The position numbers were made by a program, and so were the translations under genes. Positions 2,834 through 61,960 of a stretch of 64,000 nt of DNA are shown piece by piece; position 1 is the first letter of the stretch, and every line of letters begins with the position of its first letter. A model generated the notes under the pieces. The model searched no databases, was not told the DNA's origin, and saw nothing but the letters and a program-made list of their open reading frames with translations. The stretch comes from Carpediemonas membranifera BICM. Lineage: Eukaryota > Protista > Fornicata. Location: positions 1 through 64,000 of the forward strand of contig JAHDYR010000007.1 in the NCBI GenBank assembly GCA_019828565.1, given 5' to 3'.

Positions 2834-2849
2834 TTCGGAAAGTGATCAC

Positions 2850-2910
2850 TGTGCCGGGGCGAAGAGATTGGAACATTTACATAAACTGCGGACGTGGATG
2901 CCTTATGACA
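2850..2910 (-). repeat. putative 5' LTR of element A (61 bp, TGTCA...GCACA)
   Basis: TG...CA ends, followed by palindrome AGTGATCACT (2841-2850) and gag ATG at 2833; partner LTR not in window. Confidence 0.6.
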
Positions 2911-3869
2911 CTTGGGCCATCTGGCCATGTCCTTGTGCCCTGGTCTCACTGATGTGGGCTCGTTAGAGTTGGCGATGCGCTGATTCTCTGCTTCTCTGGG
3001 GTCTAGGGCCTCTGTTACCATGATGAAGAGGTCGCGAAGCCCGTGGATGCCGTTCGGATGTCTGAGGATGGTGTCCCTGTTGTCGGTCACTCCTGAGGCT
3101 GTGAGGATCCTTCTGACGTTGGTTAGTACTTCCTTGCGGGCTGTGGAGCTTGCGCCGAAGGACTTTTCGGAAAAGTCGTCACTTCTGCGCAGTAGTAAGG
3201 TCCGGGCGTTTCCTTCCTTGATCAGGTAGCTGTCTAGTAGTTCTCTGATGGTACTCCACTGTTTTTGCGTAGATTATCTGGTTTTCTCTGATATTTCTAC
3301 CTGCATTCACTGTGCCGTTTTTGTGCGTATGAAAAAGGTTGGCGAATGCATCGTCCTGAAAATCGGTCAGCGTGGCCTTGTGCGGCTCCTGCAACTGTGT
3401 AGGGGTCTCGGTTTTCTTCTTTTTCTCTGGTTCGGCCGTAAACTGCGTTACGGCGAAATGGCGCACTGTCCAAAAATGCACGCTGATTTTCTCGCTGGGT
3501 GGTCTCTGGATTTTAGGACTGACTTCGCCCTAGGTAGTGCCTACATGAGGGCTATCTTTGGTCTCTGTGCCTCTGCTTGATCACTCCTCCTTCACCGTGA
3601 ACATGCCAAAAACCAAAAGTGGTCGCGGCTTCTCGGTGTTCTCTGTGGGTTTCCCTGCTTTCTCTGTTAAATCTCTGTTCATTGTACTCTTGTATTGTCT
3701 CTGTGTTGGGCGTGGAGCTCCCACTCGCGCCCGGCGGGGATCCATGAATGCACCTTTGAGTTTGGCGGACAGGAAGCTGAGGCCGCTCCTTCTGAGCTGA
3801 TGGGGGCGCTGTACCAGTTTACTGGGACAGGCCGTTGGCCTTTTGTCCATCCCCGAACATAGTCTTTCG

Positions 3870-4064
3870 ACTTAGCTGAATTCGATGGCGGACTGGACAA
3901 CTTCGACTGGAAACTCGAACGCCTAGTGCTCCTGAGATATCCTCACAAGGCCCCATCCAAGATTCTGCCTCCAGTCCGCGGCCCGCTACAACTCCTCAGG
4001 GAAGGGAAGAGCCCCAACACATTCGTCCTCCGTGACCTCGTCACCAAGTCCGAGCTGCTCGTCC
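3870..4064 (+). pseudogene. Gypsy integrase C-terminal (GPY/F-like) fragment, interrupted by B1
   Basis: manual translation ERLVLLRYPHKAPSKILPPVRGPLQLLREGKSPNTFVLRDLVTKSELLV resembles the integrase tails of B, C and H. Confidence 0.7.
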
Positions 4065-4186
4065 TGTGGTTCAATGGGTGTTGAACTTTTACTGAGGAGA
4101 AGACTCGACACAAGGGTGTCGAGGAGAAACTCCTTGACTATTAAATATAACGTAAATCTGTGTAACTTTGGGTAGGACCCACAACA
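4065..4186 (-). repeat. 3' LTR of B1 (122 bp)
   Basis: matches LTRs at 16466-16587, 30154-30275 and 35979-36100. Confidence 0.95.
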
Positions 4187-4289
4187 CTGCCCCTCCATGC
4201 CTGGTATAGGCATGACAGAGAGACTTGACGTCAGCATTTCACCAAAGGCCTGGACGGTGCCACCCGACCGCCAACGGTGACTCATAGGG

Positions 4290-5019
4290 GGATCAAGGGG
4301 AGACCCCCCATGTTTCCCAGGGAGAGGGCAGGGCCAGGGACAGAGGAAATCCATCAATTGGATGGTTGCACCACTCGCGGTGAACCTAAGGAAACTGCAG
4401 GGACTGAGCATGGGATACGGGGGGACATGACGTCCCCGCCGCCCTTGTGAACGATAGAGGGACGCTGGGAAGTGTAGCACAAGAGAACTATCATAAGGGG
4501 TACTAGGCCTTGCAGATCTAGAGTCTGTGTTAGCCCTAGCCCACGCCGCCTAACAGGGGTAGATGAGAGGGACTTAGTTGCTTTCCCCGCCCACGGGTAG
4601 GCCACTTAACAGGGTCGTGGGGGCACTGAACAGGGAATCTGGAAAGAGGAGAGGGTGCCATGCTTGAACGACCCCGTAGGGACTGCAGGGAATCAGGGAG
4701 TGCTATAGAGAAGGTCTTGCAGGACAAACCTGCCTGTGGAAGCACCGAGGACAGACCCCCAGGCTCCCTGGAAGCTGCCGGGTTTACAGGGAGACAGGAA
4801 AGCGCTCAGCGCACGGAGATGGCGAAGGCCTATGGGGGGAAGTGAAATCGGGAGTGAGCGGAAGCAGTAGCACCGAATCGCTCGTTGGACGCAGCTGACA
4901 AGTCCAATCGCAGGGAGGAGGCAGCGCCCCGGGGAACTCGGCTCCAGTAATAAGGGAGATCAGCCTAAGTAACCGGGGCCCGATACCAGGCACCATAAAT
5001 TTTCTTTCTTTCTTTCTTT
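4290..5019 (+). mobile_element. 730-bp LINE 3'-end insertion with (TTTC)n tail
   Basis: 15-bp TSD CGGTGACTCATAGGG (4275-4289/5020-5034); absent from B3; homologous to the 3' UTR of the LINE at 5715-6400. Confidence 0.9.
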
Positions 5020-5714
5020 CGGTGACTCATAGGGCTGGCAACCCCATGGCCTGAGTGCTTTCGCATCTAGCTGAACGAAATCAAAATGATGGTATCATGA
5101 TCTAACTGCGGTACCGCTATGTGAGCTCTGTTTCAAAAATGGTGAAACGTGACGGAGAGGCTTACCACTGCCCCTCCACGGCCTTCCTAGGCCGTCTTCA
5201 CAAACCTTATACGTGTTATATGCCATTCCATGTAATTCGAAGGCCAAGAACGATTGCTCTAGCAAACACTGCCAATGCTGAGCCCTTATCGCTCATAATC
5301 ACACAGACGCCGAAAAACGTACTTAGAAGCTCCAATTCGGCTCCGTTGAGGAGTTCTGAGGCTTCTAATTTTCTGCGTCCAACTGTACTTGAATAACAAC
5401 ATCAAACTGACCGGAAGGAGCACTAGGAAGCTCCTAATGCCTTATTACCGACAATAAATGCATGCTTGAAGACTAAGATGACCTTGTTAGTTGTTCCTTC
5501 GACCGTTTCCGAGAAATGTGCAGGATATGTCGCCGTCAACTCATTTGATGTCGGACAACACAGCCGTAGAGGCCGTTCTGAAGGAAATTCGTGCCAAAAT
5601 CACCGAACTTGGTGATGACGATCTGGCTAGGCCACTTATTGTTGCCCATACGTCCGTTTGTCGTTCCCTTCGCGCTCAGAAGTATCGTGGACGCAAGCGC
5701 ATGGTCACCGACAA

Positions 5715-8869: not shown

Positions 8870-8909
8870 CGCATGGTCACCGACAATCTGTAAGTAACAA
8901 ACATCAACC

Positions 8910-9803
8910 GTGAGGTTATATAGTCACCGCGTGCAAGCCTCAGAACGCATCACTCGCACCCTGACGATGACGACTCTGATGCCCCACGACATCAAGGCCG
9001 AGGTTGCCCGACGCCTGGAAGGTTACACCAACTCCATCGAGCTGCCGCTCCAGCGAATCTTTGACGCTATTGAGCAAGGTCGTCTGAACGACGCAGCCGT
9101 AGTGCAGGACGTGAAGCTGACCCAGCAGGTCTTGGCTCTCGTGGCTCACTGCCAGGTCGCGCTTGCCGGTGTGAGGGCCCACCTCAAGCTCGGCAGGAAG
9201 CGCTTGACCGATGGCGACATCGTGTCGGCCGCGATCCGGGGCCGCGACATCACGCTGGGTGGGTCTTCACCCGGTAATGGTCACTACTCTGCAGCTCTCG
9301 TGGCGGCTGTGCGGACTGCCGGCGGGGTCAAGTCGGACACTACAGCGCGCGGATATCTTAACCGCCTGTTGGTCCTCGTCCTCGCACCGGACTACTTCCG
9401 TGTCGCTGTCTACGGCATCAGCCGGCGCATCCCGGCTCCCAACGACTTCTGGGCAACCCTGGTCAGCCGCTTGTGCCACGACGGCTACCTGCCCGCCATT
9501 GGCGATGAGGCTCACTGGGAGCCGCTTCAGGTCTCTGATCCGGACCGCTACTACACTGTCACGTGCGTAGTCCGTCACGAGTATCTGAAGACGACTTGTG
9601 GTCCCGGGTCTTTTGTGTTGATCCTGCAGTATGACGGATACTCGGGACTCAGCATCGTGTCCCTCAACGCTGATCTCTGCCTTGTCCGGTGTGTGCGAGA
9701 GTACTTGGCTGAGAACGCCCTTGAGCGCCACGCTGACCCGACTTGGTTGGTCGAGCTGACGGACACGGAGGAGACGGAAGACGAGGAATCTAGCTCTGAA
9801 TAA
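8910..9803 (+). CDS. antisense accessory ORF of element B (C-terminal chromodomain-like; likely ATG 8967)
   Basis: 297-aa ORF intact in all three B copies, converging on the pol stop. Confidence 0.75.
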   Translation: MRLYSHRVQASERITRTLTMTTLMPHDIKAEVARRLEGYTNSIELPLQRIFDAIEQGRLNDAAVVQDVKLTQQVLALVAHCQVALAGVRAHLKLGRKRLTDGDIVSAAIRGRDITLGGSSPGNGHYSAALVAAVRTAGGVKSDTTARGYLNRLLVLVLAPDYFRVAVYGISRRIPAPNDFWATLVSRLCHDGYLPAIGDEAHWEPLQVSDPDRYYTVTCVVRHEYLKTTCGPGSFVLILQYDGYSGLSIVSLNADLCLVRCVREYLAENALERHADPTWLVELTDTEETEDEESSSE

Positions 9804-9845
9804 ATCGTTTGTTCCTCGAGGATACAGCTTCGATGTTGAGAAGTT

Positions 9846-10661
9846 TTACAGACCGTCACGCTTGGCTTGGTCAGACTTCAAATATGTATCGAGGGCTTCC
9901 AAATCTTTGACGTGCGAATAAGGTTCGAATGAAGCCTCTGAATCCTCGAATCCGACCCAGTGTACGAGGTACTCGCGCCTTGACTTGGGGCCCGAGCCTC
10001 TAGAGCGTGAGATGCGCTCGACATGCCACTCATCGACGGAAGCGGCTGCGAGGTCATAGATCTGTTGCTCCGAGAGCTTGCCTGGGTCAAATCTTCGCAC
10101 ACGTGCCGCGTCTACCTTGATAGTTGGACCGTCCGCTGACTGACTGAGGTCTTGGACCTCATATGCGACGACAACACCATCACGTTTGACGGCTGCGACA
10201 CGCCTCATGGGGCCGCGCCAGCCCGGGGCTAGCTTGCTCGGTGGTCTTGGGTAGTATTTGACCAGCACGAAACGGCTCAATATCTCGCTTCTCGATGAGG
10301 TTGCCTTTGCGAGAGCGTCTTCGCGCATGGCTCTAATCCTTGCTTTGGCGAGTTGGATGGCGGCATCGGCTGCGGCTAGCTTCGACTGTGGCGGACCAGC
10401 CGAGGCGGCATCCGTGATATAGATCGATGACGGTATTGATAAGTTGGCGCCAAACATGATCTCGGCCGGAGTCAACCGGGTCGGGATCCTGGGCATTGAG
10501 TTGACCAAGAATTGGGCGACTGGTAGGTGTGCTACCCAATCGTTATTCCTTAACTCCAGCTTCCTGGCTCTGAGGATGCGTTCGACCTCCTTGTTCGCGC
10601 GTTCGACGACACCGTTGCTCTGGGGATGGTATGCTGTCGTTATGTGGACGTCGAACCCCAT
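9846..10661 (-). CDS. integrase C-terminal half plus chromodomain, B1 (partial)
   Basis: YHPQSNGVVER, WRGP, WHVERI...YLVHWVGF. Confidence 0.9.
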   Translation of the reverse strand: MGFDVHITTAYHPQSNGVVERANKEVERILRARKLELRNNDWVAHLPVAQFLVNSMPRIPTRLTPAEIMFGANLSIPSSIYITDAASAGPPQSKLAAADAAIQLAKARIRAMREDALAKATSSRSEILSRFVLVKYYPRPPSKLAPGWRGPMRRVAAVKRDGVVVAYEVQDLSQSADGPTIKVDAARVRRFDPGKLSEQQIYDLAAASVDEWHVERISRSRGSGPKSRREYLVHWVGFEDSEASFEPYSHVKDLEALDTYLKSDQAKRDGL

Positions 10662-10672
10662 CTCTTCGGAGA

Positions 10673-10988: not shown

Positions 10989-13976
10989 GTGTCCGTCCTG
11001 TTCGACTCGGGCGCTGACTGCGCAACCATTGACCCCAAGCTCTGCCACGGCAAGGCAGTGAAGTGGATCTCACACGAGAAGACACTTATCGAGACAGTGG
11101 GCGGCGTCAGAGAGGCCGATGGTCAGGTATCCTTCCGCCTCGTCTTAGCGCCCTCGCCATTCACTCCGCGCGGATGCTCTATCACTATTAAGGCCTACGT
11201 CCTGTCGACCGCTTTCGATGTATGCCTGGGTTACCCTCAGATGGTGGAGATCGGCCTTCTCCCTTCGTTGTCTGAGCCTACCAGCGAGCTCGCAGCCAGC
11301 GACGAACCACCTACATTCGAGAAGTACGTCGCGCAAGCCAGAGCCATGTCCTCTTCCTTTTCTCAGAGGCAGGCCGACATCCTCAAGCGTTACGCCCGGA
11401 CATTCGTGGACCGTACCGAGCCAAGCCGGCTCGAACCGTATGATTTGGTCCTCAAGGGCGACAGAGTCGTACACATTCGGCCGTACTATGTTCCCCCGCC
11501 GAAAGTCCCGATCATTCAAGAGCACATTAATACGCTCCTGGCAAAGCGCTACATCGAGGCATGCCAGTCTCAATACGCGAGCCCTACCATCATAGTTCCA
11601 AAGAAGGGGGGAAAGACGCGTTTTGTCGTCGACTTCCGCGAGATCAATCAACTAACGGAACCATTCGACTACCCCATCCCTCGCATAGACGAAGTTCTCA
11701 CTCAACTGTCCGGAAAGTCTGTGTTCGCTACCCTAGACTTGTCAGCAGGATACCATCAGATCCCTCTTACTGAACGGTGCCGTCACCTAACCGCCTTCCG
11801 TACTGTTTTTGGTCAATACCAATATACACGGATGCCCTTCGGCTTACGTAACGCCGGAGCGTACTTCCAGAGGGCGATGGAAGACGGGTTCAAGGGTCTG
11901 GTGGGCTCCGCCTGTGTCATATACATTGATGACATCATCGTCATGGGTGCGGATGAGGACGAGTACCTGGGAAACCTCGAAAAAGTCATGCAACGCGTTG
12001 ACAAGCTTAACCTTCAGCTCGGCCGAGATAAGTGCCAGTTCGGTCGGCAAGAGGTCGAGTTCCTCGGGTGGATCATATCCCAAGGCAGCGTGAAGATCTC
12101 ACCCCAGCGGACCGAAGATATCGCGAACCTCAAGCTGTCTTCATCCACGAAGGGCATGCAGGGTCTCAACGGATTCCTCAACTATTTCCGCGATTACATA
12201 CCCAACTTCGCGGTCCGAGCTAAGCCTCTGCTAGACGCCATGTCCGGTCGGCAGACCCCCTCGAGACGTTCTTCAGAAGTCGCTGGACGATCTGAAACAA
12301 GCTTTATGTTCGGCCGACGCTCTAGCCATGTTCGACGCGACTAAGCCTCACACCGTCATGACTGACGCATCCGATGTCGGGTACGGAGCAGTCTTACTCC
12401 AAGAGGGCCGACCAGTTTGTTATATGTCGCGTGCGTTCAACGACGTCCAGTCACGCTGGTGTACCGGTGAGAAAGAAGCCTACGCTATCGTGGCAGCGTT
12501 ACAACGATGGCGCAAGTTCCTGTGCTGGGAGAGCTTTACTATTCTCACGGATCACCGGAACCTACTCTATATGTACCGGTCCACCAACGCCAAGGTCCGC
12601 CGGTGGGCTGATTCGATCGCCGATTTAGATTTCACCCTACAGCACATCGCCGGTCTGGACAACGGTGGAGCCGACGGTCTCTCGAGAGTATTCTCCATGC
12701 AACAGGCGTCGAGGGATCAGGTATCCCGCGCTCATCTCACAGCAGGAGCTCATCTGTCTCGCCGGATGACAACCGAGCAACTTAGGGCCGACGGTTTGTC
12801 TGTCTCCCGTCAAGTCGTAGACGACGTGATTACCGCGTGTCCAGAGTGCCAAGTCTTGGCCCGCCCTCCTGTTGATACGCCCGACGGCCTGCATACAGCT
12901 GTAGACCTCCCGTTCCGGCGTGTGGCCATTGACACCATGGGTCCGCTACCGACGGTCAACGGCCTGTCCTACGTGACAGTAATGATCGACATGTGCTCCC
13001 GCTGGACAGAGCTAGTCCCGGTCAACAGCACCTCAGCCAAAGACGCAGCCAACGCATTGGTCAACACCTGGATTCTACGATACGGATGCCCCCGAAGTCG
13101 TCCAATCGGATGGGGGCTCAGAGTTCAAAAACGCTCTGTTCAAACGCCTCTCCGAAGAGATGGGGTTCGACGTCCACATAACGACAGCATACCATCCCCA
13201 GAGCAACGGTGTCGTCGAACGCGCGAACAAGGAGGTCGAACGCATCCTCAGAGCCAGGAAGCTGGAGTTAAGGAATAACGATTGGGTAGCACACCTACCA
13301 GTCGCCCAATTCTTGGTCAACTCAATGCCCAGGATCCCGACCCGGTTGACTCCGGCCGAGATCATGTTTGGCGCCAACTTATCAATACCGTCATCGATCT
13401 ATATCACGGATGCCGCCTCGGCTGGTCCGCCACAGTCGAAGCTAGCCGCAGCCGATGCCGCCATCCAACTCGCCAAAGCAAGGATTAGAGCCATGCGCGA
13501 AGACGCTCTCGCAAAGGCAACCTCATCGAGAAGCGAGATATTGAGCCGTTTCGTGCTGGTCAAATACTACCCAAGACCACCGAGCAAGCTAGCCCCCGGG
13601 CTGGCGCGGCCCCATGAGGCGTGTCGCAGCCGTCAAACGTGATGGTGTTGTCGTCGCATATGAGGTCCAAGACCTCAGTCAGTCAGCGGACGGTCCAACT
13701 ATCAAGGTAGACGCGGCACGTGTGCGAAGATTTGACCCAGGCAAGCTCTCGGAGCAACAGATCTATGACCTCGCAGCCGCTTCCGTCGATGAGTGGCATG
13801 TCGAGCGCATCTCACGCTCTAGAGGCTCGGGCCCCAAGTCAAGGCGCGAGTACCTCGTACACTGGGTCGGATTCGAGGATTCAGAGGCTTCATTCGAACC
13901 TTATTCGCACGTCAAAGATTTGGAAGCCCTCGATACATATTTGAAGTCTGACCAAGCCAAGCGTGACGGTCTGTAA
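10989..13976 (+). pseudogene. pol of B2 (protease, RT, RNase H, integrase, chromodomain; 3 frameshifts)
   Basis: ORFs 10989-12344, 12328-13278, 13160-13642, 13614-13976; the indels lie in C-runs. Confidence 0.9.
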
Positions 13977-14018
13977 AACTTCTCAACATCGAAGCTGTAT
14001 CCTCGAGGAACAAACGAT

Positions 14019-14912
14019 TTATTCAGAGCTAGATTCCTCGTCTTCCGTCTCCTCCGTGTCCGTCAGCTCGACCAACCAAGTCGGGTCAGCGTGGCGCTCA
14101 AGGGCGTTCTCAGCCAAGTACTCTCGCACACACCGGACAAGGCAGAGATCAGCGTTGAGGGACACGATGCTGAGTCCCGAGTATCCGTCATACTGCAGGA
14201 TCAACACAAAAGACCCGGGACCACAAGTCGTCTTCAGATACTCGTGACGGACTACGCACGTGACAGTGTAGTAGCGGTCCGGATCAGAGACCTGAAGCGG
14301 CTCCCAGTGAGCCTCATCGCCAATGGCGGGCAGGTAGCCGTCGTGGCACAAGCGGCTGACCAGGGTTGCCCAGAAGTCGTTGGGAGCCGGGATGCGCCGG
14401 CTGATGCCGTAGACAGCGACACGGAAGTAGTCCGGTGCGAGGACGAGGACCAACAGGCGGTTAAGATATCCGCGCGCTGTAGTGTCCGACTTGACCCCGC
14501 CGGCAGTCCGCACAGCCGCCACGAGAGCTGCAGAGTAGTGACCATTACCGGGTGAAGACCCACCCAGCGTGATGTCGCGGCCCCGGATCGCGGCCGACAC
14601 GATGTCGCCATCGGTCAAGCGCTTCCTGCCGAGCTTGAGGTGGGCCCTCACACCGGCAAGCGCGACCTGGCAGTGAGCCACGAGAGCCAAGACCTGCTGG
14701 GTCAGCTTCACGTCCTGCACTACGGCTGCGTCGTTCAGACGACCTTGCTCAATAGCGTCAAAGATTCGCTGGAGCGGCAGCTCGATGGAGTTGGTGTAAC
14801 CTTCCAGGCGTCGGGCAACCTCGGCCTTGATGTCGTGGGGCATCAGAGTCGTCATCGTCAGGGTGCGAGTGATGCGTTCTGAGGCTTGCACGCGGTGACT
14901 ATATAACCTCAC
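14019..14912 (-). CDS. antisense accessory ORF of B2
   Basis: same protein as 8910-9803. Confidence 0.75.
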   Translation of the reverse strand: MRLYSHRVQASERITRTLTMTTLMPHDIKAEVARRLEGYTNSIELPLQRIFDAIEQGRLNDAAVVQDVKLTQQVLALVAHCQVALAGVRAHLKLGRKRLTDGDIVSAAIRGRDITLGGSSPGNGHYSAALVAAVRTAGGVKSDTTARGYLNRLLVLVLAPDYFRVAVYGISRRIPAPNDFWATLVSRLCHDGYLPAIGDEAHWEPLQVSDPDRYYTVTCVVRHEYLKTTCGPGSFVLILQYDGYSGLSIVSLNADLCLVRCVREYLAENALERHADPTWLVELTDTEETEDEESSSE

Positions 14913-15630
14913 GGTTGATGTTTGTTACTTACAGATTGTCGGTGACCATGCGCTTGCGTCCACGATACTTCTGAGCGCGAAGGGAACGACAAACGGACGT
15001 ATGGGCAACAATAAGTGGCCTAGCCAGATCGTCATCACCAAGTTCGGTGATTTTGGCACGAATTTCCTTCAGAACGGCCTCTACGGCTGTGTTGTCCGAC
15101 ATCAAATGAGTTGACGGCGACATATCCTGCACATTTCTCGGAAACGGTCGAAGGAACAACTAACAAGGTCATCTTAGTCTTCAAGCATGCATTTATTGTC
15201 GGTAATAAGGCATTAGGAGCTTCCTAGTGCTCCTTCCGGTCAGTTTGATGTTGTTATTCAAGTACAGTTGGACGCAGAAAATTAGAAGCCTCAGAACTCC
15301 TCAACGGAGCCGAATTGGAGCTTCTAAGTACGTTTTTCGGCGTCTGTGTGATTATGAGCGATAAGGGCTCAGCATTGGCAGTGTTTGCTAGAGCAATCGT
15401 TCTTGGCCTTCGAATTACATGGAATGGCATATAACACGTATAAGGTTTGTGAAGACGGCCTAGGAAGGCCGTGGAGGGGCAGTGGTAAGCCTCTCCGTCA
15501 CGTTTCACCATTTTTGAAACAGAGCTCACATAGCGGTACCGCAGTTAGATCATGATACCATCATTTTGATTTCGTTCAGCTAGATGCGAAAGCACTCAGG
15601 CCATGGGGTTGCCAGCCCTATGAGTCACCG

Positions 15631-16362
15631 AAAGAAAGAAAGAAAGAAAAATTTATGGTGCCTGGTATCGGGCCCCGGTTACTTAGGCTGATCTCCCTTA
15701 TTACTGGAGCCGAGTTCCCCGGGGCGCTGCCTCCTCCCCTGCGATTGGACTTGTCAGCTGCGTCCAACGAGCGATTCGGTGCTACTGCTTCCGCTCACTC
15801 CCGATTTCACTTCCCCCCATAGGCCTTCGCCATCTCCGTGCGCTGAGCGCTTTCCTGTCTCCCTGTAAACCCGGCAGCTTCCAGGGAGCCTGGGGGTCTG
15901 TCCACGGTGCTTCCACAGGCAGGTTTGTCCTGCAAGACCTTCTCTATAGCACTCCCTGATTCCCTGCAGTCCCTACGGGGTCGTTCAAGCATGGCACCCT
16001 CTCCTCTTTCCAGATTCCCTGTTCAGTGCCCCCACGACCCTGTTAAGTGGCCTACCCGTGGGCGGGGAAAGCAACTAAGTCCCTCTCATCTACCCCTGTT
16101 AGGCGGCGTGGGCTAGGGCTAACACAGACTCTAGATCTGCAAGGCCTAGTACCCCTTATGATAGTTCTCTTGTGCTACACTTCCCAGCGTCCCTCTATCG
16201 TTCACAAGGGCGGCGGGGACGTCATGTCCCCCCGTATCCCATGCTCAGTCCCTGCAGTTTCCTTAGGTTCACCGCGAGTGGTGCAACCATCCAATTGATG
16301 GATTTCCTCTGTCCCTGGCCCTGCCCTCTCCCTGGGAAACATGGGGGGTCTCCCCTTGATCC
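15631..16362 (-). mobile_element. same LINE 3'-end insertion, in B2
   Basis: same site and TSD (15616-15630/16363-16377) as in B1. Confidence 0.9.
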
Positions 16363-16465
16363 CCCTATGAGTCACCGTTGGCGGTCGGGTGGCACCGTCC
16401 AGGCCTTTGGTGAAATGCTGACGTCAAGTCTCTCTGTCATGCCTATACCAGGCATGGAGGGGCAG

Positions 16466-16587
16466 TGTTGTGGGTCCTACCCAAAGTTACACAGATTTAC
16501 GTTATATTTAATAGTCAAGGAGTTTCTCCTCGACACCCTTGTGTCGAGTCTTCTCCTCAGTAAAAGTTCAACACCCATTGAACCACA
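16466..16587 (+). repeat. 3' LTR of B2 (122 bp)
   Basis: TGTTG...CCACA, preceded by PPT. Confidence 0.95.
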
Positions 16588-27795: not shown

Positions 27796-27810
27796 ACGAC
27801 GGTATGCAAG

Positions 27811-41420: not shown

Positions 41421-41493
41421 AGCGCCCAATGGAAGTTGAATCCATGACCTATCGGACTGCAGCCGATTGCTCTACCAACTGAGCTATAGACGC
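41421..41493 (-). tRNA. tRNA-Cys(GCA)
   Basis: acceptor GCGTCTA/TGGGCGC with U73 discriminator, anticodon arm ATCGG-CTGCAGT-CCGAT, T-arm ATGGA-TTCAACT-TCCAT. Confidence 0.88.
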
Positions 41494-41686
41494 TTGCATA
41501 CCGTCGTAGACGCGATGCGTAAGTACGCCTCGGGGCGTGGTACAGGCCCAGATGGACTACCGGCCATCTGGTACAAATATTCGAGAGAGATCGAATATTG
41601 ACCAAATATTCGAATCAAATCTACGGTCCAGTTCAGACCAATTTTACCAAGGGGTTAAAACCCCATTCCCCGGTAGTTCCGAGAAG

Positions 41687-49787: not shown

Positions 49788-49933
49788 AACGTGGAATACT
49801 AGTATTGTGGTTCGTTTGACGAACTATGTTTACAGAGGAGAAGACTCGACACAATGGTGTCGAGGAGAAACTCCTTGACTAACTAATATCATATATAAAT
49901 CTGTGTAATCTTGGGTGAGACCCATGACAGGAC

Positions 49934-52802: not shown

Positions 52803-55800
52803 ACCAGGGAGTATGGGGCTGTGAAGACCTCGCAGCCAGCCTCAGGAGTTATGAGAAGTACATTGTCAACCTCAGGGTACCGAAGAACAGCGACAGGGCA
52901 TTCATTGGCGCCACGTTCATCCCCAGAGACTGGGGCCTCATCAGGGTCCGTGAAGCAGGGACAGTGCTGACGCGCATGCGGAAAGGGAAGGACAACGACC
53001 TCAAGTCGGCTGTCGTCCCGGAGGAACGCAAGGCCATAGTCGGCAGACTCCCGCCTAGGGACTACAGCCCGCTCATTCAGGGACTGGACGAGAAGTCATA
53101 CAAAGTCAGATACGTGAACACAAGGCTTAACGAGGCGGCAGCCATGATAGAGACCAGGATGAGGGGCAGACACATAGTGGCGCCCAGAGACAGGGACGAC
53201 AGAGCAGACCGCTATCGGGACGACAGAGAACAGGACCGACAGAGAAACAGAGGCTCCGAGCGGGGGGAGGCTAGAGGCTACGACCGCCGGAACAACGATC
53301 ATGACAATCGCCGGGGCGATAGGGACTACGACCGCCGCGATGACAGAGCCGGCCACAGCGAGACGGAACTCCTCGACATGTGCTTGGTTTGGCCTTGAAG
53401 GGAACTTTCCAATTAATGGATGAGAACTGATTTACTCCTGGAAACCGCAGTGGTGAAAATGGTCAAAACCAAAACCTTAAACTGCGCCTCACCACAGACA
53501 GGGACGCATTTGGCCCGGACAGCTGGTCCACCACCGGGAGTGGCAGGGGTAGCAACAGGGACAGCACGACTTCCAAAGGCTTCAAGCGGAAGGACGGCGG
53601 CCGGAGCAACGAGAACGGCCTAGCAGACCCAGCAGATGGCAAGCGAAGCAGGGAAGATGAGGACCAGGACCAGATGTCTGGAAGCAGACAGGCGTCCGAC
53701 TGGGAATCGGACAGACTCCGCCTTCAGAAGCAGTTAGCTGAGGCTCAGCAGACGATCTCCAAACTCAAGGCAGCCCAGATAGCCGCACAGAAGCAGGGAC
53801 CGGCAACCAGCAGTGAGGCCTCGACAGTGGCCCCAGGGCCCGGAGGGGAGAAGACGATCACCATGGTGCCGAAGCGGAAGAAGAAGGCCAAGGCCAAGAA
53901 GCAAAGGATGGCCACCCAACCCAACCCGATGATGGACGCCATGGCCCAGTTCATGAACATGATGGCGAGCATCCAGAGCCAGATGGGCCTACAGGAACAG
54001 GGTACAGGCGACAGTGACAGTGATAGCCAAATGGAGAGCGAGTAATCAGGGTAAAGCAGTATTCTTTCAGTGACAGGTAACAGTTGTTTTTCTTCTATAA
54101 TAATAAGCCCTGGCTCCCACCCAGGGCCTGGCATTAGTTTATGGACACTGCCAGTAGGCTGCGACGGCGGCCAAAGGGGGGGTCACGCCATTGCGCCCCC
54201 TCCTAAATGCGCCTGCCTGACGATGGAAGGTCACCAGGAATTGCGGAAGCTGGCCTACCCAGGGACACCGAGGCCGGCACTGAGGGGCCCAGGGTAGGAC
54301 AGGGACTTACACAGACAAAATTTTCCGAAATTCGCAGAATAAGGGGAACGGAGTACAGCAAATGGAAACATTCAGAATAGTCAGTATGAACACGCAGGGA
54401 CACATCGGACGCGGAAAAGACTTCACAGCGTCAATAGCTACCGCACTACAAACAAGACTAGGAGATATCGAAGCCATATGCATACAGGAGACCTGGAGAA
54501 CGGCAAACACAAGAGTACACCACTTCATCGACTTTGACTATGCGCTAGCAGGGAAAGAAACAGAGGAAGAACTGGCAACAAGGAACGAAAAGCGGAAGAA
54601 GGATGTCCTAAGTCAACACAGCATTAACAGACAGATAGGTATAGCAGGGAACGATGAGCCGACGCCCAAATGGCGGGGGACCAGGGAAGGCATAGGAACA
54701 ATCGTCAGCCCGCATGCAAAGGGGGCATGGGACGTAGGCATAACGGACAGCCTGTCGGGAAGAATCCAAGCGAGCGTTATGCGGACACAAAGGGACATAC
54801 TCATAATCAACGTTTACGGCCCACCATCGGATCATAGGAAGGAGGAGAAAGACATGTTCAGGGACAACGTGCTGGAGATACTAAAAATGAAAGGGAGCAT
54901 GGAGGCTATCATCATTGGAGACTGGAACATGAGCCCGGATCAGTTAGCTACAGGGGCCAGATGGAGGGACATGATGAGGAGACACGGGCTAAGGGCTATC
55001 AAACCAGGGACAAGCACCCTCACGACAGGAACAACGACACCGGACTTCGCGGCGGTCACAGCAGGAATCAGGGGAGCAAGGATAGAAGTCCTAGATTCTA
55101 CCGAGCTTGGCGTATGGGGGTCGGCCCATAACGGTATCAGACTAGAATGGGAAGAAGCAGGGACCGATGGGAACACAACCTACGAGGAAGACCTAACAAT
55201 GCCGGGCACTCACACATGGAGAATGAGGAAAAGTGGTCCAAAGACCACCATACCCATCCTGAATAGAGAGAAGAGCATCGACCAGTGGGAGGAGTCCATC
55301 AGGGCACACATAGGTACCCCAGCAAGCAAAGGGAAGGACAGGGAGAGAGAGAAAGTGTTCAAACCGAGCGTATGGAGTGACCTAGCCCGAACCCCGTGGA
55401 CGGAAGCAGGAAACAGGGACAGGGAGCGGACAATGAAAGCCGAACTTGCAAGATTCTGGGAGGCACGCAGGGAGACATGGATACAGGACCTCAGCAGGAG
55501 CACGAAGGAAGGTTACAGGGCATCAAGATCAGTAGTCGAGGCGGCGGTAAGGCGATGGTGGTGCGACAACCAGTACAAAGGTATGCCGGGCAGCCTACTG
55601 AAAGATGGAACAATCACCACAGATAAGGCTACGATCAGTGAGATCCTACTAAAACAATACGCAAAGGTAAGCAGGGGAAGGGAACCGCAATGGAAAACAT
55701 GGCGGGGCAGGGGAGACAGCGAATTCAAGGAAGATGAGGTCAGGGCGGCGATCAGGAGAATCAAGAGGGACACAGCGCCAGGACCCGAGCACACAACTGG

Positions 55801-55963
55801 AGACATGCTCAGGGACCTCGACGGCAAAGGGCTCAGGGAAATCGCCAGGTTTATGAATAGAATATACAAGGAAGGTAGGGTACCAACGACGTGGAAGTAT
55901 GCCACCGTTTCAGCCATCCACAAGACAGGGAAGCCCAGGGTTAAGCCCGAATCGTATAGGCCA
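52803..55963 (+). mobile_element. LINE 5' part (ORF1 pieces and ORF2 start), 3'-truncated
   Basis: RD-rich/basic ORFs 52803-54045 precede ORF2; 55560-55960 is homologous to the LINE at 8460-8869; boundaries approximate. Confidence 0.8.
54362..55963 (+). pseudogene. LINE ORF2: APE endonuclease and start of RT
   Basis: SMNTQG, CIQET, INVYGP, IGDWN, SAH, APGP, SYRP; breaks into Gypsy sequence. Confidence 0.9.
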
Positions 55964-56490
55964 CTCGCGACACTCATAAGAGAGGATACGCCTTTAAGCC
56001 GCAGGTCACCATCGCGCCTCACCCGATGCATACCTGGGCCATCGATTTCCTCGGGCCCTTGCCCGAGGGAGACCACGGTGCTCGGTACGTGCTCGTCATG
56101 ACCGATTGCTTCAGCCGCTTCGTCGAGCTATACGCCACACCAAACTGCACCGCCGAGTCTGCCGCAGACGGCATCATCGCCCTGGCCGGACGGTACGGTT
56201 GCCCAGTCCACCTCCGCTCTGACCAGGGATCACACTTCACGGCCAAGCTCACCAAGCAACTCACTGAGGCCCTGCACGTGGACCACGACTTCGTCCTGCC
56301 GTACGACCACCAGTTTAACGGCATTATCGAGCGAGCCAACGGAGAAGTTAACCGCCACCTCCGTGCCGCCGTCGCCGAACTCCGAGACCGTCGCCTTTGG
56401 TACAGAGCGCTGCCACTGGTCCAGCACATTCTCAACAGCTCGCATCATGGCGCGGACGGGTTCGTCCCGGCTGAAATCATGTTCGGCAGC

Positions 56491-59400
56491 TGTCATGACG
56501 ACCTCATTTAATGATCAGTCTTATTTGGTCAATGATCTCAAACCTGCTTCTAAATTTCATTCTCTCAATTGTTTGGGTACCACAGTAATTACTGCATGCA
56601 TTTACCTGAAACAAAACTCAACAACGCCCCGTTCCTGCGAAAGGCCACCACCAAGTCGTGGTATACTTTCCGTCAAGACTACGAGCAGTATGCTGCCCGT
56701 GAAGCCGATCCGATCGTTGCCTTTGACCTAATCGAAACGCAGGTCCTAGAGGTTCTTAAGATCCGAATCCCTGAACTTGAGGGGTTCCTGGAGTACGCTA
56801 ATGAAACGCCGGATGAAGAGCCGGCCGATACCTCTGAACTCAACGAGGCCTTTATCACCATGGTAGACGAGCTGATGCAGCCTCTGGATGAGGTGGACGC
56901 TTTAGATCGCTTTAAGGACTTGTCGTGCGGCTCTGAGGGTAACCTCATTGACAACATGGCCGCGTATGCCCTGGCGTATAAGCGTCAAGTTCGTAACTGT
57001 TGTAAGGTTCGGCCCACGGAGAAGCTCATCGTCGATGCCTTTGTTGCTGGCATCAGGTACGGTCGCTTGAAGGAGCGAGTGAATGCTAAGAAGGCGAAGA
57101 CGCTTGACGAGACGATCGCCGAGGCATTCATCCAGGCCACGGAAGCAGAGAAGGCTCGCAGAGAGCACCAGCGTGTGGAGCGAGAGAGTGCGACCTCCGC
57201 AACGATGACTAAGGCTAAGGAGAAGTCGGAAACTGCTTGTGAGTACTGCCAGCGCAAGGGTCACACTGCTGATACGTGTTGGAAGCGTAAGCGTGACGAG
57301 CGTGAGGGAGTAAAGGGGCAGAAGTACGTTCATCTTAATGCTTTGGTCGCGGAGGACCGCGACAACAGACCCATTGGCGAGGTGGGCATCCTGGGGAGAG
57401 TGTTGGCGTTCCTTTATGACACAGGGGCCTCTACCGACTTTATATCCCAATCCCTCGTCAAAGAGCTCGGCCTAGTCGTCGAGCCCGACCATGCTAAGGT
57501 TAAGCTGGCCACTGGTACGATTTACAACTCACCCGGCATTGTTAAGTTGAGTGCAGATTTTGGAGTGTTGCCATCTACTGGGCGGAGAACTCAAGCTGCT
57601 CTCAATTTGCGGGTGCTACCCGGGCTGAAGCCGACATTAGTTATGGGAATATCGACATTAAGTGCGTTGGGGCTAATCACGATCGTCAAGCCGACGATGG
57701 AGAATTCTGGAGAGCCACACTTCGCGGAGCTTGATGAAGATGAAGTAGACGAGACGTTATTTACCCTTGCTGAAGCGGAGCACGAACTACAGATACGTAG
57801 CTTCCCTGAAGAGACTAATACCATCCTAAGCAAGTACAAAGACGTTCTCGGCGACATTTCGCAGCCAGCAGACGTTCCACCCTTCGAACTGGTTCTTACA
57901 AACCAGAAGGTTATCAACATCCCTCCATACCACGTCTCGGCTGAAGAAAGAGAGGATATGCAGCGCCAGACGGCGCAGCTGGAGGATCTGAATGTGATTG
58001 AGGAGTCTACGAGCAACTATAACAATCCTACGGTGCTTGTATGGAAGCGCGATCGCACCCGCAGGCTCTGCTTGGACTTTCGGCGCCTTAACGACGCGAC
58101 GGAGGACTTCGATCACGACCTCCCTATCATTGACGATCTGGTAGCAAGACTAGAGGGTAAGACCCTCTTCGCTAAGCTGGACCTAAGCAAGGCCTTTCAC
58201 CAGATTCCTATGACCAAGAGCTCACGCAGACTAACGGCGTTTACAGTTGGGAAGCGTAAGTATCAGTACAAGCGTTTAGCTTTCGGACTCAAAGGGGCCG
58301 CAGCCTTCTGTCAGAAGACCCTCGAATCCGTACTGGGCGATGCACTGTGGACACGGTGTCTCGCATATGTAGACGACATAGTAATATTCGGAGAGAACCA
58401 GAGAGAGTACCTCGACAATCTGGACTATGTCTTGAGAAAGCTCAACTCGGCCAAGTTGAAGCTGAATCTGTCCAAGTCTGAGTTCGGACTGACAGAAATA
58501 GAATACTTGGGCTGGCTTGTGAATGGCGACGGCAAGCGAATCGCGCCTGACCGCCTAGAAGGCATCGACCGCCTAACCAGCCCGAGAGATGTTGCCGGAG
58601 TCAGAACCTTACTCGGGTTCACGAACTATTTTAGCCATATGATTCCGAACTACGGCAATATGATGGAGCCAGTCCTGGCTCTGACGAGAGCCAAGGAAGA
58701 GTTCCGTTGGGAGAAGGCCCAACAAGATGCCCTAGTCGACATCAAAGCGACCCTATCTCAGAACAACATGTTAAGTCACCCCAAGCGTGGCTGCCAATTA
58801 ATCCTACAAACCGACGCGAGTGACTACGCTGTCGGGGCAGTTTTGTTACAGATCGAAGACGGGGAGGAGCGTCCGATTGCTTTCTATTCCAAGACACTAT
58901 CGGATGTTCAAAGAAGGTGGAGCACCTATGAAAAGGAAGGCTTCGGCATTTGTTACGCTATGATCAAGGCCGAGCGGTTCCTAGTAGGCAGGCCGTTTAC
59001 TGTGAGAACGGACCACCGGAATTTGCTGTATATCGCGACAAGCACGAACGCTAAGGTAACTAGATGGCGCATGGCACTGGAAAGGTTCGACTATTCCGTC
59101 GTACACGTGCCTGGTCAAGCGAACGGTGCTGCCGACGCGCTATCTCGCCTATGCGGTGCAACAGTCGAGGCAGATGATCACGCCACGTGGATCTCCGAGG
59201 TTCACGGAGGCATACACGGCCATCTCGGAGCGAGAGCGACGGTGAACAAGCTTATATCGCTCGGTAGGAGGTGGAGGGGCATGTATAAGGACGCAGAGGA
59301 GTTTGTCCAGTCGTGTCCTGTGTGCCAGGTCACGCGCAAGACGGCCAAGCCCGTCCAACACTTGCGCCACCGTACGGCAGGTCGCCTGCCGTTTGATGTC

Positions 59401-60835
59401 GTGCAGGTAGACACGATCGGACCCATCGCGGAGAGCGAGGGTCTGCGGTACGTGTGCGTGTTAATTGACACGTACTCGAAGCTAACTATGCTGGTCCCCA
59501 CGCGTTCGACGGACGCAGATGTCGCGGCAGGGGCAATTTTGGCCTGGGTGGGTCACTACGGAATTCCCCGGGTGATTCACAGCGACGGGGGCAGCCAGAA
59601 TAGAAATAAGCTGATTGACGCTCTAATGGAAAGGCTCGGGTCGCAACATCACGTCGGCACGCCTTACCGCCCGGGTTCTCAAGGAATAGTTGAGAGGGTC
59701 AACGCCGAGGTTAAGAGGCATCTAGAGACGCTAATGCTCGATCTGCAGGAGTTTAGATGGACGCGGCTACTACCTTTGGCTCAGTACATCATTAATTCAA
59801 CATCTGTGGCCAGGACAGGCCTATCGCCACTGAATTTGCTTTATAACCAAGACGTGGTCGTAAGACCAGAAGAGATCATGAGCAATGAGAGCAAGATGCC
59901 ATTTGAGGCCTTCAAGCGCAGCCTGGAACTACAGAGAGTCATCCAAGACCAGGCGCTGCAACAACAAACACCAGCAGAAGCATCGCACGTGGCCCTATCG
60001 AACAAGCCAGTGCTGGTAACGACCACTGTCGGCCGCCGCACGAAGCTGGCTGGGCCAATGTGGTGCCAGGGACCCGCAGAGTCACCGAACGTTTACTTCG
60101 TGGAGAACCTGACGACAGGCGTAGTGGCTAAGGTCCATGCCGAGCGTCTAAGGCATTTTGAGTCTGACGCGACAAGGGCTGAGTTGACACGGCTAGCGGC
60201 CCAGAGAGTTGACGAATATGTCGTAGAAGCGATCGACTCTCACAAATTTGAGGACGGCGTCCTTCACCTACATGTGCTGTGGGAGGGGTACCTCGAGGAA
60301 GAGGCGACATGGGAACGCTTCAACGCCGACCTTGATGAACTTAGGGCGTTTGAGGAGTACCTCGCAGACAAACCGAGTTTGCGCAGAAAACTCCGAGGTC
60401 AAAGGAAATTAGCTTCCTATAGGCAGCGCTAATAACCAACGGCTCATCAAAAAGCCATTTTGGGGTTTTGCCCAGTTGGTGACCGCAGCCTAGGGGGGGA
60501 AGAGCAGAACGTTGGAATCTAGTTACTGATATTGGTTATTTCTTATGTTCTACACCATTCTGTGCGCTATTTGTTCGTTTAGAACAGCGTTCTTCAGACT
60601 ATTGTGCTCAATTGCGTTTTTGACTTCACTGGAGTCGGTCTGGCGGGTTTTGCATTTCGCCGGACTTGAACCGTTAGAATTTTTGCTGACGGTTGGGAGG
60701 CACGTTTGAGCTTGTGGACGGTTTGGGATCATGGGGGGAAGTGTCATGACGACCTCATTTAATGATCAGTCTTATTTGGTCAATGATCTCAAACCTGCTT
60801 CTAAATTTCACTCTCTCAATTGTTTGGGTACCACA
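56491..60835 (+). mobile_element. complete Gypsy chromodomain element I (4345 bp), relative of H
   Basis: 94-bp LTRs 56491-56584 and 60742-60835 (1 mismatch); 5-bp TSD GCAGC; PPT ATGGGGGGAAG. Confidence 0.97.
56596..60432 (+). CDS. intact gag-pol polyprotein of I
   Basis: single ORF; CCHC knuckle, YDTGA, YVDD, TDAS, integrase, chromodomain. Confidence 0.95.
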   Translation: MHLPETKLNNAPFLRKATTKSWYTFRQDYEQYAAREADPIVAFDLIETQVLEVLKIRIPELEGFLEYANETPDEEPADTSELNEAFITMVDELMQPLDEVDALDRFKDLSCGSEGNLIDNMAAYALAYKRQVRNCCKVRPTEKLIVDAFVAGIRYGRLKERVNAKKAKTLDETIAEAFIQATEAEKARREHQRVERESATSATMTKAKEKSETACEYCQRKGHTADTCWKRKRDEREGVKGQKYVHLNALVAEDRDNRPIGEVGILGRVLAFLYDTGASTDFISQSLVKELGLVVEPDHAKVKLATGTIYNSPGIVKLSADFGVLPSTGRRTQAALNLRVLPGLKPTLVMGISTLSALGLITIVKPTMENSGEPHFAELDEDEVDETLFTLAEAEHELQIRSFPEETNTILSKYKDVLGDISQPADVPPFELVLTNQKVINIPPYHVSAEEREDMQRQTAQLEDLNVIEESTSNYNNPTVLVWKRDRTRRLCLDFRRLNDATEDFDHDLPIIDDLVARLEGKTLFAKLDLSKAFHQIPMTKSSRRLTAFTVGKRKYQYKRLAFGLKGAAAFCQKTLESVLGDALWTRCLAYVDDIVIFGENQREYLDNLDYVLRKLNSAKLKLNLSKSEFGLTEIEYLGWLVNGDGKRIAPDRLEGIDRLTSPRDVAGVRTLLGFTNYFSHMIPNYGNMMEPVLALTRAKEEFRWEKAQQDALVDIKATLSQNNMLSHPKRGCQLILQTDASDYAVGAVLLQIEDGEERPIAFYSKTLSDVQRRWSTYEKEGFGICYAMIKAERFLVGRPFTVRTDHRNLLYIATSTNAKVTRWRMALERFDYSVVHVPGQANGAADALSRLCGATVEADDHATWISEVHGGIHGHLGARATVNKLISLGRRWRGMYKDAEEFVQSCPVCQVTRKTAKPVQHLRHRTAGRLPFDVVQVDTIGPIAESEGLRYVCVLIDTYSKLTMLVPTRSTDADVAAGAILAWVGHYGIPRVIHSDGGSQNRNKLIDALMERLGSQHHVGTPYRPGSQGIVERVNAEVKRHLETLMLDLQEFRWTRLLPLAQYIINSTSVARTGLSPLNLLYNQDVVVRPEEIMSNESKMPFEAFKRSLELQRVIQDQALQQQTPAEASHVALSNKPVLVTTTVGRRTKLAGPMWCQGPAESPNVYFVENLTTGVVAKVHAERLRHFESDATRAELTRLAAQRVDEYVVEAIDSHKFEDGVLHLHVLWEGYLEEEATWERFNADLDELRAFEEYLADKPSLRRKLRGQRKLASYRQR

Positions 60836-61589
60836 GCAGCCGCGCCGATACCAACCGTGTCCTACTCTCTCCTCCCCAAGAGGGGGTGGGGGAGCTCCAT
60901 ACCTACATGAAGGAGCTCCTGGAAGACCAGCGACGCCTTATCCAGGCTATGCCCGACGCCAGGGCACAGGCACATGACGATGTCGATCCCACTTACCTGC
61001 CTAACGCCGGTGACGCAGTTGTTGTGACCCGCCCGGATCACCTGCGTCCTTCCAAACTCTCGTCGCTCTACATGGGCCCTTACACGATCCAAGAAGTCCA
61101 CGCCGACCAAGCCTTCGTCTCCCTCCTCAACCTCCGCACGGACAAGCTGGAGACATTCCATCTGTCCAGGGTCTTCCCCTTTAACGGCCAATACTCCAAC
61201 GCCGACCTCCGCGACATCGCCGCACGCGACCCCCAGGAGTACACCGTTGAGGCCATTGTCGACCACCGTCTCGGCCGCCGCCGCCGCCAACACCGGTTCC
61301 TCGTCCGCTGGGCAGGGTATTCCGCCGACTTTGATGAATGGCTCCCGTATGCCGAGGTCCGCGACCTCGCCGCGCTCGACGCCTACCTCGGACCATCCCG
61401 GTCTCCAGCTCTAAGCGAGTAGTGTTATAAGCGAGGAGTATCGAGCTGTTGCCCGGGGTGTTTACGTGTTACATATGTAATATGTAATTCCCCGGGGTTG
61501 ATTCGCTCCTGTGATTTGGTCTCGCCCGGTCAAATTCGACACCCTTGTGTCGAATTTTAAATCACTCTTCGCCAGCTTTGCCTTTGTTG

Positions 61590-61960
61590 TCTCCGTTCGC
61601 GAGAACAGAGTGTAGTTCTTGTCGGATGTGTCTGTGCCTTCGGCCTTGAGTTCGAGGGCAAATGACTCCTCAATGAGGACGGACAGTGGGATGCTTGGGT
61701 TTTGTATAGTAAAAATCGTTGCTCGGCGCTCAAACACCTCAAGAGTCTCTAGTGTTAGATTTGAAGGAGAAAGCTCAGGAATTTGAACAGTTAACGACAT
61801 CAGCACAGCTAATACTAGTATTGTCGGTTGAAATCATTTACAGTAAACCGCAGCGCGGTAAAAGTGGTCAAAACTGGACGAGCAGTTTATAGGCCAGGCC
61901 GTTCCTGGCGTGCGGTGCCCATCGCCGCGGAGCCGCAGACCTACGTAGCTGCGGAGAGCA
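61590..61960 (-). mobile_element. Gypsy J 5' fragment (LTR end 61822, palindrome, gag start about 61800)
   Basis: ...CCGACA|ATACTAGTATT then ATG and a gag-like N-terminus; outer limits uncertain. Confidence 0.55.

Follow-up and report, generated by a model that had tools for sequence, protein, structure and literature searches.

The window, the whole 64-kb stretch of DNA analysed here, very probably from Carpediemonas membranifera, carries chromodomain Ty3/gypsy retrotransposons (chromovirus, Metaviridae) with very short LTRs of 61–131 nt, labelled A, B, C, D1, D2, H, I, and J. Pfam matches on C, I, B, and H gave the order PR-RT-RNase H-IN with a C-terminal chromodomain and a gag CCHC knuckle; the C polyprotein comprises gag CCHC, PR, RT, RNase H, IN, and chromodomain. 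Antisense ORFs had no Pfam match. Other Ty3/gypsy hallmarks were also present: TG...CA LTRs, a polypurine tract (PPT) before the 3′ LTR, and a target-site duplication (TSD) of 4 bp in A, B, and C and 5 bp in H and I. The family A element is truncated by the contig start, D1 is split by D2, and J has a degenerate gag and adjoins the inserted element I. We set the LTR ends independently of any palindrome, using LTR pairs, TSDs, or 3′ and solo copies elsewhere in the genome:

2850–2910, minus strand: 5′ LTR of A, 61 nt, TGTCAT...GGCACA; more than 25 copies, with five paired 5′/3′ flanks that give 4-bp TSDs.
21428–21494, minus strand: 5′ LTR of H, 67 nt; 3′ LTR at 17212–17278 after the PPT TCTTGGGGGAAG; TSD GAGGG.
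About 22501–22631, plus strand: LTR of D1, about 131 nt; boundary from homology to the C LTR only.
Ending at 22993, plus strand: LTR of D2, about 100–108 nt; a solo copy (L198) ends ...GAGACCACA.
30154–30275, plus strand: 5′ LTR of B, 122 nt; 3′ LTR at 35979–36100 after the PPT ATGGAGGGGCAG; TSD GTCC.
49806–49929, minus strand: 5′ LTR of C, 124 nt; 3′ LTR at 43894–44017 after the PPT ATGGAGGGGCAG; TSD GTCC.
56491–56584, plus strand: 5′ LTR of I, 94 nt; 3′ LTR at 60742–60835 after the PPT CATGGGGGGAAG; TSD GCAGC.
61822 to about 61897, minus strand: LTR of J, about 74–76 nt; LTR-only copies end at window position 61822.

The end of the C LTR is marked by twelve 3′ or solo copies elsewhere in the genome, which diverge right after ...GAACCACA. 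Identical copies are numerous for families A, C, and J. For family A, a G at the start of all 3′ flanks among the matches listed, whose ranking favours those resembling the query, suggested an LTR ending in ...CACAG. Pairing of the 5′ and 3′ flanks ruled this out, as it yielded 4-bp TSDs that begin with G.

An earlier note on this DNA had claimed a perfect palindrome at eight 5′ LTR junctions, none starting with TGG. A direct check of the sequence found all eight where they had been placed, with perfect symmetry and no TGG start:

2841–2850, minus strand: palindrome of A, AGTGATCACT; the A at 2850 both opens the palindrome and ends the LTR, and the gag ATG is 7 nt downstream.
21418–21429, minus strand: palindrome of H, CAATATATATTG; its first CA is the LTR end, and the ATG is 2 nt downstream.
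22631–22642, plus strand: palindrome of D1, AATACTAGTATT; ATG 5 nt downstream.
22993–23004, plus strand: palindrome of D2, AATACTAGTATT, at the 3′ end of the D2 LTR.
30275–30286, plus strand: palindrome of B, AGTACTAGTACT; gag ATG at 30297.
49795–49806, minus strand: palindrome of C, AATACTAGTATT; polyprotein ORF at 45747–49787.
56583–56594, plus strand: palindrome of I, CAGTAATTACTG; ATG 1 nt downstream, polyprotein ORF up to 60432.
61811–61822, minus strand: palindrome of J, AATACTAGTATT; ATG 10 nt downstream.

The first base of the palindrome is the final A of the LTR in A, B, C, D1, D2, and J, and its first two bases are the terminal CA of the LTR in H and I. The palindromes are AT-rich (0–40% G+C versus 55% in the window). 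One sequence recurs in C, D1, D2, and J, three of which are related, so we count five independent palindrome sequences rather than eight. The 64-kb window contains 82 maximal perfect palindromes of at least 10 nt, compared to approximately 65 after shuffling, a background of 1.3 × 10⁻³ per position. Chance falls far short of accounting for five distinct sequences that all begin exactly at the junction.

In the replication of LTR elements, the U5 end of the LTR records the start of minus-strand synthesis. Because the LTR boundary marks this start, the palindrome would have to be the primer-binding site (PBS). No other PBS would fit, since the palindrome abuts the LTR end and the gag ATG of the window elements follows within 1–10 nt.

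To describe how the sites vary, we compared nine LTR-defined junctions. Pairing was 100% Watson-Crick, with no G:U. Four of the six pairs showed double changes and none of the six a one-sided change, a covariation score reached by none of 500 shuffles. The compensatory pairs reported earlier, one between B and C and two between H and I, are both correct, and the covariation among junctions bears out the claim that symmetry, not sequence, is conserved. Even close relatives differ in this way: the central AT of L083 is TA in the near-identical L085 and L091, and the outer pair changes from C-G to T-A between the sisters L128 and L124. Predicted energies were 0 to −2.6 kcal/mol for hairpins and −8.4 to −16.6 kcal/mol for dimers. 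Stable dimers are predicted, and the palindrome has no evident hairpin context. Symmetry that continues right through the centre would fit pairing of two like strands from separate molecules rather than a hairpin.

Among 80 metagenomic relatives, nearly all readable 5′ junctions on the window's side of the tree had the same kind of palindrome. Six metagenomic loci with LTR ends set by LTR pairs have a palindrome whose first base is the final base of the LTR, and approximately 20 further candidates carry such palindromes. Relatives keep the palindrome at the LTR edge even though their ATG lies 40–250 nt from it. Junctions on the many metagenomic contigs that end in assembler overlaps (77, 99, or 127 nt) or start inside an ORF were unreadable and were left unlabelled; three of the closest protein relatives (L071, L072, and L074) had no readable LTR junction. 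The earlier note had ascribed the palindromes to every Gypsy family. This held for the window and for most readable relatives, but L073, itself one of the closest protein relatives, and L125, both on a neighbouring branch, have an ordinary TGG site. In an RT-IN tree, the TGG-bearing loci group with fish, fungal, and nematode elements, and the palindrome/TGG label requires one change only. The palindrome elements, which are only ~30% identical in RT-IN, separate from the fish/fungal branch in this tree, which holds no reference Tf1 or sushi sequence. As judged from their sequences, they are a deep lineage of compact chromodomain Ty3/gypsy retrotransposons.

We searched for a primer among host RNAs and in the LTRs themselves. 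The tRNA sample comprised 23 distinct host tRNAs (63 were scored among 497 first-look candidates). None had a 3′-anchored match of at least 4 nt, consistent with the earlier claim that the site is not a tRNA 3′-end PBS. The best pairings of these 23 tRNAs with the sites reached 5–7 Watson-Crick pairs, no better than with shuffled sites, and matches to their internal segments, as in half-tRNA priming, were likewise not above shuffled sites. One 10-nt match of the C/D1 site to the 5′ end of tRNA-Trp was rejected; it is mostly G:U and was equalled by 7–10% of shuffles. Other host small RNAs were covered through a genome count of the core motif alone. Genome-wide, the core ATACTAGTAT has 68 occurrences (62 in LTR-junction context), compared to five for its reversed control, and its sites outside elements were at chance level, with no excess. 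The same comparison for the motif GTACTAGTAC (49 versus 63 for the reversed control) was uninformative. Some copia lineages are known to use half-tRNA primers (PMC6317226), and the tRNA sample was partial. A host tRNA fragment or other host small RNA would nevertheless have to fit five distinct sites within this genome, plus many others in relatives; every one is a palindrome, a symmetry that a host RNA would not require. We regard such a primer as highly improbable. Folding of the 5′ end of the element transcript back onto the site, as in the Tf1/sushi group, would account for a non-TGG site of ~10–13 nt, comparable to the 11-nt Tf1 PBS, and self-priming has been predicted for Tcn1/Tf1-related chromoviruses (PMC6317226; PMC4600332). 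The earlier note had found no complement of the motifs in the LTRs of B or C. This holds for B and for 10 of 11 LTR families in all: the LTRs of A, H, D1, B, and I and of five metagenomic elements had no complement of the site beyond shuffles. The exception is C, whose LTR contains a 9-nt complement if G:U is allowed (p ~0.04). As this match is missing in B and D1, we judged it to be chance. With 10 of 11 families lacking a complement, Tf1-type cis self-priming is not supported; it also offers no reason for a palindromic site, and we consider it quite unlikely.

The palindrome could be a signal for genome dimerisation or packaging only, with an unsampled host RNA or an unconventional primer starting synthesis. 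Palindromes in retroviral 5′ leaders link RNA dimers, the HIV-2 PBS holds a palindrome for loose dimers (PMC5874298), and the dimers predicted here are stable. However, the LTR boundary falls exactly on the first palindrome base, which obliges priming to begin at that point; the short gap to the ATG, the tRNA result, and the motif count outside elements also argue against this reading, and each family would need a separate host primer. On balance, a dimer signal alone is unlikely. Alternatively, the symmetry could act on DNA, as the site of a dimeric protein (integrase, a host factor, or an initiator-type promoter element) or through pairing of like-sense DNA ends during reverse transcription. 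The strictly Watson-Crick pairs, with G:U wholly absent, and the occurrence of AT-rich sites immediately 5′ of the ATG in this host would fit such a role, but families, and even elements that are nearly identical, differ in sequence yet preserve the symmetry, central bases included, the palindrome holds to the LTR edge in relatives with a distant ATG, and a protein site need not begin on the last LTR base. This explanation seems very unlikely to us. As for chance or an artefact of calling LTR ends, the eight sites are not independent, but against the background given above, five distinct window sequences and six LTR-paired metagenomic loci begin on the last base (in H and I, the last two bases) of the LTR. 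These counts already refute this reading, and we give it next to no weight.

We consider it probable, from sequence comparisons, that the palindrome is the PBS and that the element's own RNA serves as primer, supplied by a second copy that pairs with the first through the palindrome. Self-complementarity is the only complementarity of the site, so the corresponding stretch of another element RNA would be the most likely primer. Given the observed position, symmetry, covariation, and lineage-wide conservation of the palindromes and the missing tRNA or LTR partner, we infer RNA-RNA pairing, a cut, and a nuclease that makes it. Pairing through the 10–16 nt palindrome would join two genomic RNAs packaged together, or else one genomic RNA and a short 5′ fragment. 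One strand would then be cleaved on the 3′ edge of the duplex or close to it, possibly by RNase H, by analogy with the cut reported in Tf1, and the new 3′ OH would be extended into U5 and R of the partner RNA. The palindromic site would thus be dimer linkage and PBS in one. If both RNAs of the dimer were cut, the template would lose its copy of the PBS, so the model needs asymmetry or spare RNAs.

Several known systems share parts of this arrangement. Tf1 has been reported to prime itself after RNase H cleaves an RNA duplex, and co-packaged Tf1 RNAs reportedly also prime one another in trans. Tf1, Tf2, Tj1, and the Tf1/sushi group resemble the window elements in that they are chromodomain Ty3/gypsy elements that lack a tRNA PBS and instead have a short one (~11 nt) abutting U5. 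In the Tf1/sushi group, for which self-primed reverse transcription has been described (PMC4600332), the primer is the element's own RNA, freed by a cut in an RNA duplex; here, the same is a proposal. The Tf1 PBS is non-palindromic and pairs with a distinct sequence located at the 5′ end of R, whereas no LTR partner was found here. Since the window sites pair only with themselves, the pairing would, unlike in Tf1, have to be between two molecules. Retroviral dimer initiation sites, like the palindromes here, are short self-complementary sequences in the 5′ leader, and there they bring two genomic RNAs together. The HIV-2 PBS contains a palindrome (PMC5874298), whereas here the palindrome fills the whole PBS position and there is no tRNA site. 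Retroviruses still use a tRNA as primer, and their main dimer site is a hairpin loop. Dictyostelid Skipper elements are, like those of the window, protist chromoviruses without a TGG site or an LTR complement, but they have a degenerate polypyrimidine stretch in place of the PBS, in contrast to the mixed-base palindromes that follow the LTR here.

To our knowledge, LTR elements have just two established priming modes, tRNA priming and Tf1-type self-priming. In the literature searched, we found no description of a palindromic PBS as a priming mode; only papers on retroviral dimerisation matched. We tentatively propose, at a little short of even confidence, a third mode beside tRNA priming and Tf1-type cis self-priming, in which a palindromic PBS doubles as the dimer linkage and co-packaged genomic RNAs prime each other. 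Perfect symmetry would be restored, and compensatory double changes would arise, as the partner's palindrome is copied into plus-strand DNA. This mode may be ancestral to a widespread lineage of protist chromoviruses with very short LTRs.

Few mechanistic characters distinguish retroelement lineages, and priming mode is among them. A palindrome that is conserved and covaries exactly at the U5 edge across elements so divergent in RT-IN points to a distinct, host-independent solution. If the proposal is true, priming and genome dimerisation would be linked, and it would also explain how the elements cope with LTRs of 61–131 nt. Canonical tRNA-primed Ty3/gypsy elements share with the window elements the TG...CA LTRs, the PPT, the TSD, and the order gag-PR-RT-RH-IN-chromodomain; they have a TGG PBS, whereas the window elements have neither TGG nor tRNA complementarity. 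Annotation tools that rely on the PBS would miss or mis-score this lineage.

All eight palindromes that the earlier note had placed at 5′-LTR/internal junctions of the Ty3/gypsy families in the window were found at their positions, and all eight are perfect. They overlap the LTR by 1-2 nt, as had been claimed, with the start on its last A in A, B, C, D1, D2, and J; in H and I the palindrome extends one base further, to take in the whole CA.

Junction palindromes and LTRs of the window families
A: palindrome 2841-2850; LTR 2850-2910, 61 nt
H: palindrome 21418-21429; LTR 21428-21494, 67 nt
D1: palindrome 22631-22642
D2: palindrome 22993-23004
B: palindrome 30275-30286; LTR 30154-30275, 122 nt
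C: palindrome 49795-49806; LTR 49806-49929, 124 nt
I: palindrome 56583-56594; LTR 56491-56584, 94 nt
J: palindrome 61811-61822; LTR 61822-61897, about 75 nt

By Pfam, the elements are chromodomain Ty3/gypsy elements, with a gag CCHC motif, protease, reverse transcriptase, RNase H, integrase, and chromodomain; the gag ATG lies 1-10 nt downstream of the palindrome. We determined LTR ends independently of palindromy. Inside the window, H, I, B, and C each retain both LTRs, with target-site duplications around each pair and a polypurine tract ahead of the 3′ LTR. Elsewhere in the genome, 12 3′ or solo copies of C part ways directly after ...GAACCACA, and ATACTAGTATT continues in 15 of 15 5′ copies. 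More than 25 copies define the 61-nt LTR of A, and five paired flanks (copies L162/L200, L167/L202, L172/L208, L163/L209, and L173/L210) reveal 4-bp duplications. LTR-only copies of J end at window position 61822, a solo copy of D2 ends in ...GAGACCACA, and the D1 end was set by homology to the C LTR. The window contains 82 maximal perfect palindromes of at least 10 nt (1.3e-3 per position), compared to ~65 after shuffling. The exact start on the last LTR base in five distinct sequences is far beyond chance. C, D1, D2, and J have one sequence in common, which makes the eight sites non-independent.

The closest proteins in a large database were at most 35% identical, and in one of these relatives, L073, the site is of the ordinary kind: ACA|TGGTAGACAGAGCC. 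Scanning metagenomic contigs with an alignment of the reverse transcriptase-integrase (RT-IN) region yielded 80 loci; those left unlabelled were mostly contigs beginning within the ORF. At junctions defined by LTR pairs, six metagenomic loci have a perfect palindrome from the last LTR A. Some 20 further loci, with junctions placed by the polypurine tract and TG...CA or by a partial LTR, share this pattern.

Junction sequences in relatives
Junction defined by LTR pair:
L075, palindrome AATAACGTTATT
L082, palindrome AATATTTAAATATT
L084, palindrome AGTATATATACT
L099, L100, and L148, palindrome AGTGTTAACACT
L125, ATA|TGGTATCTG
Junction placed by polypurine tract and TG...CA, or partial LTR (examples):
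L083, AGTTATAACT
L085/L091, AGTTTAAACT
L079/L105, CAATAATATTATTG
L088/L120, AGTATTAATACT
L076, CAGTAATATTACTG
L128, CAATAAATTTATTG
L124, TAATAAATTTATTA

In an RT-IN tree (IQ-TREE, quick search), a branch with an SH-aLRT of 92 united L073 and L125 with fish, fungal, and nematode gypsy proteins. All window families fell outside this branch, as did every palindrome locus except L138, a long-branched candidate. A single change suffices to explain the palindrome on the tree, with weak support (57) for that split. The palindrome elements, with an RT-IN identity of ~30% across them, are by this placement a deep lineage and no quirk of a single genome.

The earlier proposal that symmetry rather than sequence is conserved was borne out at nine LTR-defined junctions with 12-nt palindromes. 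All 48 cells were Watson-Crick, two-sided changes occurred in four of the six pairs, and one-sided changes occurred in none. The covariation score was matched by 0 of 500 shuffles, and each slid register scored far worse. L083 and L085/L091, whose proteins are almost identical, differ at the palindrome centre (AT to TA), and the sisters L128 and L124 differ at the outermost pair (C-G to T-A). The shell, A-[G/A]-T ... A-[C/T]-T, is near-invariant. An LTR overlap of 1 nt is the rule, with 2-nt cases at about chance frequency. The sites are AT-rich, and longer where G+C is absent. Predicted energies were -8.4 to -16.6 kcal/mol for dimers, compared to 0 to -2.6 for hairpins. Since the symmetry runs through the central four bases, it argues for a duplex of two like strands rather than a hairpin.

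The earlier note suggested searching the motifs against host tRNAs. Our tRNA gene set, 40 from the genome plus the two in the window, comprised 23 distinct sequences, none of which matched better than shuffled sites. The best Watson-Crick run between these tRNAs and the sites with flanks was 5-7 nt (shuffled mean, ~6), no 3′ end among the 23 anchored at the junction, and matches allowing G:U pairs were inside the shuffle range. As any other host RNA complementary to the site must itself include the palindrome core, we counted the core across the genome. ATACTAGTAT occurs 68 times, of which 62 are junctions with the ACA...T context, and its reversed control five times, a distribution that counts against other host RNAs as partners. 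A Tf1-type site, which pairs with the 5′ end of the element's own transcript, was also rejected: the A, H, D1, B, and I LTRs contain no complement above shuffles, nor do five metagenomic LTRs. The claim that the B and C LTRs lack a complement held for B and, in Watson-Crick terms, for C; with G:U pairs the C LTR has a 9-nt complement, which is absent from B and D1.

Minus-strand DNA of LTR elements starts at the U5 end of the LTR, so the palindrome must be where the 3′ end of the primer anneals. If the palindrome were purely a dimerisation signal, no primer would be left where the LTR boundary demands one. The sequence turnover between near-identical elements is difficult to reconcile with a symmetric protein-binding site in the DNA, and in relatives the palindrome is anchored to the LTR edge rather than the ATG. 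Since the site is conserved only as its own complement, its simplest partner is another copy of itself, which is why we favour trans self-priming by element RNA, every step of which we infer. Two element RNAs would pair through the palindrome, one would be cut near its distal edge, and the cut end would be extended with the partner as template. Tf1 offers precedents: in its self-priming an RNA duplex is reportedly cut by RNase H, and trans priming is said to occur between co-packaged RNAs. Should the partner's palindrome be copied by the plus strand, in the way that retroviral plus strands copy the tRNA end, a single mutation would produce a heteroduplex whose repair could yield reversion or a compensated double mutant. 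Such copying and repair would account for perfect Watson-Crick symmetry without G:U intermediates.

The earlier note did not know of this priming mode as one already described, and our full-text literature searches likewise found no description of a palindromic primer-binding site in LTR retrotransposons. Among the nearest described cases are Tcn1/Tf1 relatives, for which self-priming is predicted (PMC6317226). Element-derived priming is the known part; a distinct priming mode is a possibility.

The LTRs are exceptionally short (just 61-131 nt in the window families, 73-166 nt in metagenomic relatives). Each has one AT-rich patch and, 20-40 nt from its end, a (C/A)(T/A)GTAAA-like motif, which may be initiator and poly(A) signal. 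The B and C LTR interiors (30225-30244 and 49838-49857) contain a perfect 8-bp hairpin, CTCGACAC-N4-GTGTCGAG, kept in D1 with one mismatch, that may be a structure in R. In the metagenomic relatives L077 (54-65), L124, and L116, T replaces C before the palindrome's A, so that the LTR would end in TA, not CA; in L124 the far end changed in step, G to A. Target-site duplications are 4 bp in A, B, and C and 5 bp in H and I. GTCC is the target of both B (30150-30153/36101-36104) and C (49930-49933/43890-43893), and the first base of the A duplication is G or C in 18 of 18 5′ flanks seen.

Near their 3′ ends, three elements have ORFs of ~300-380 aa antisense to pol, with no Pfam match at E up to 0.01:
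34279-35172, minus strand, in B
44555-45703, plus strand, in C
26925-27818, minus strand, in D2

A repeat-flanked element at 36101-41345, present in two copies, has a 916-aa ORF (38040-40790) with a weak Phage_integrase match and looks like a tyrosine-recombinase retroelement; its copies and B lie in a nested arrangement, bounded by tRNA-Tyr (27811-27883) and tRNA-Cys (41420-41494). Beside element I, an ORF at 54362-56101 with a weak match to Exo_endo_phos_2 (endonuclease-reverse transcriptase) is probably a non-LTR retrotransposon fragment. Large inverted duplications (8870-10672 versus 13149-14952; 4064-5714 versus 14936-16587) involve a second B copy that has lost its 5′ LTR, and are rearrangements, not simple nesting.
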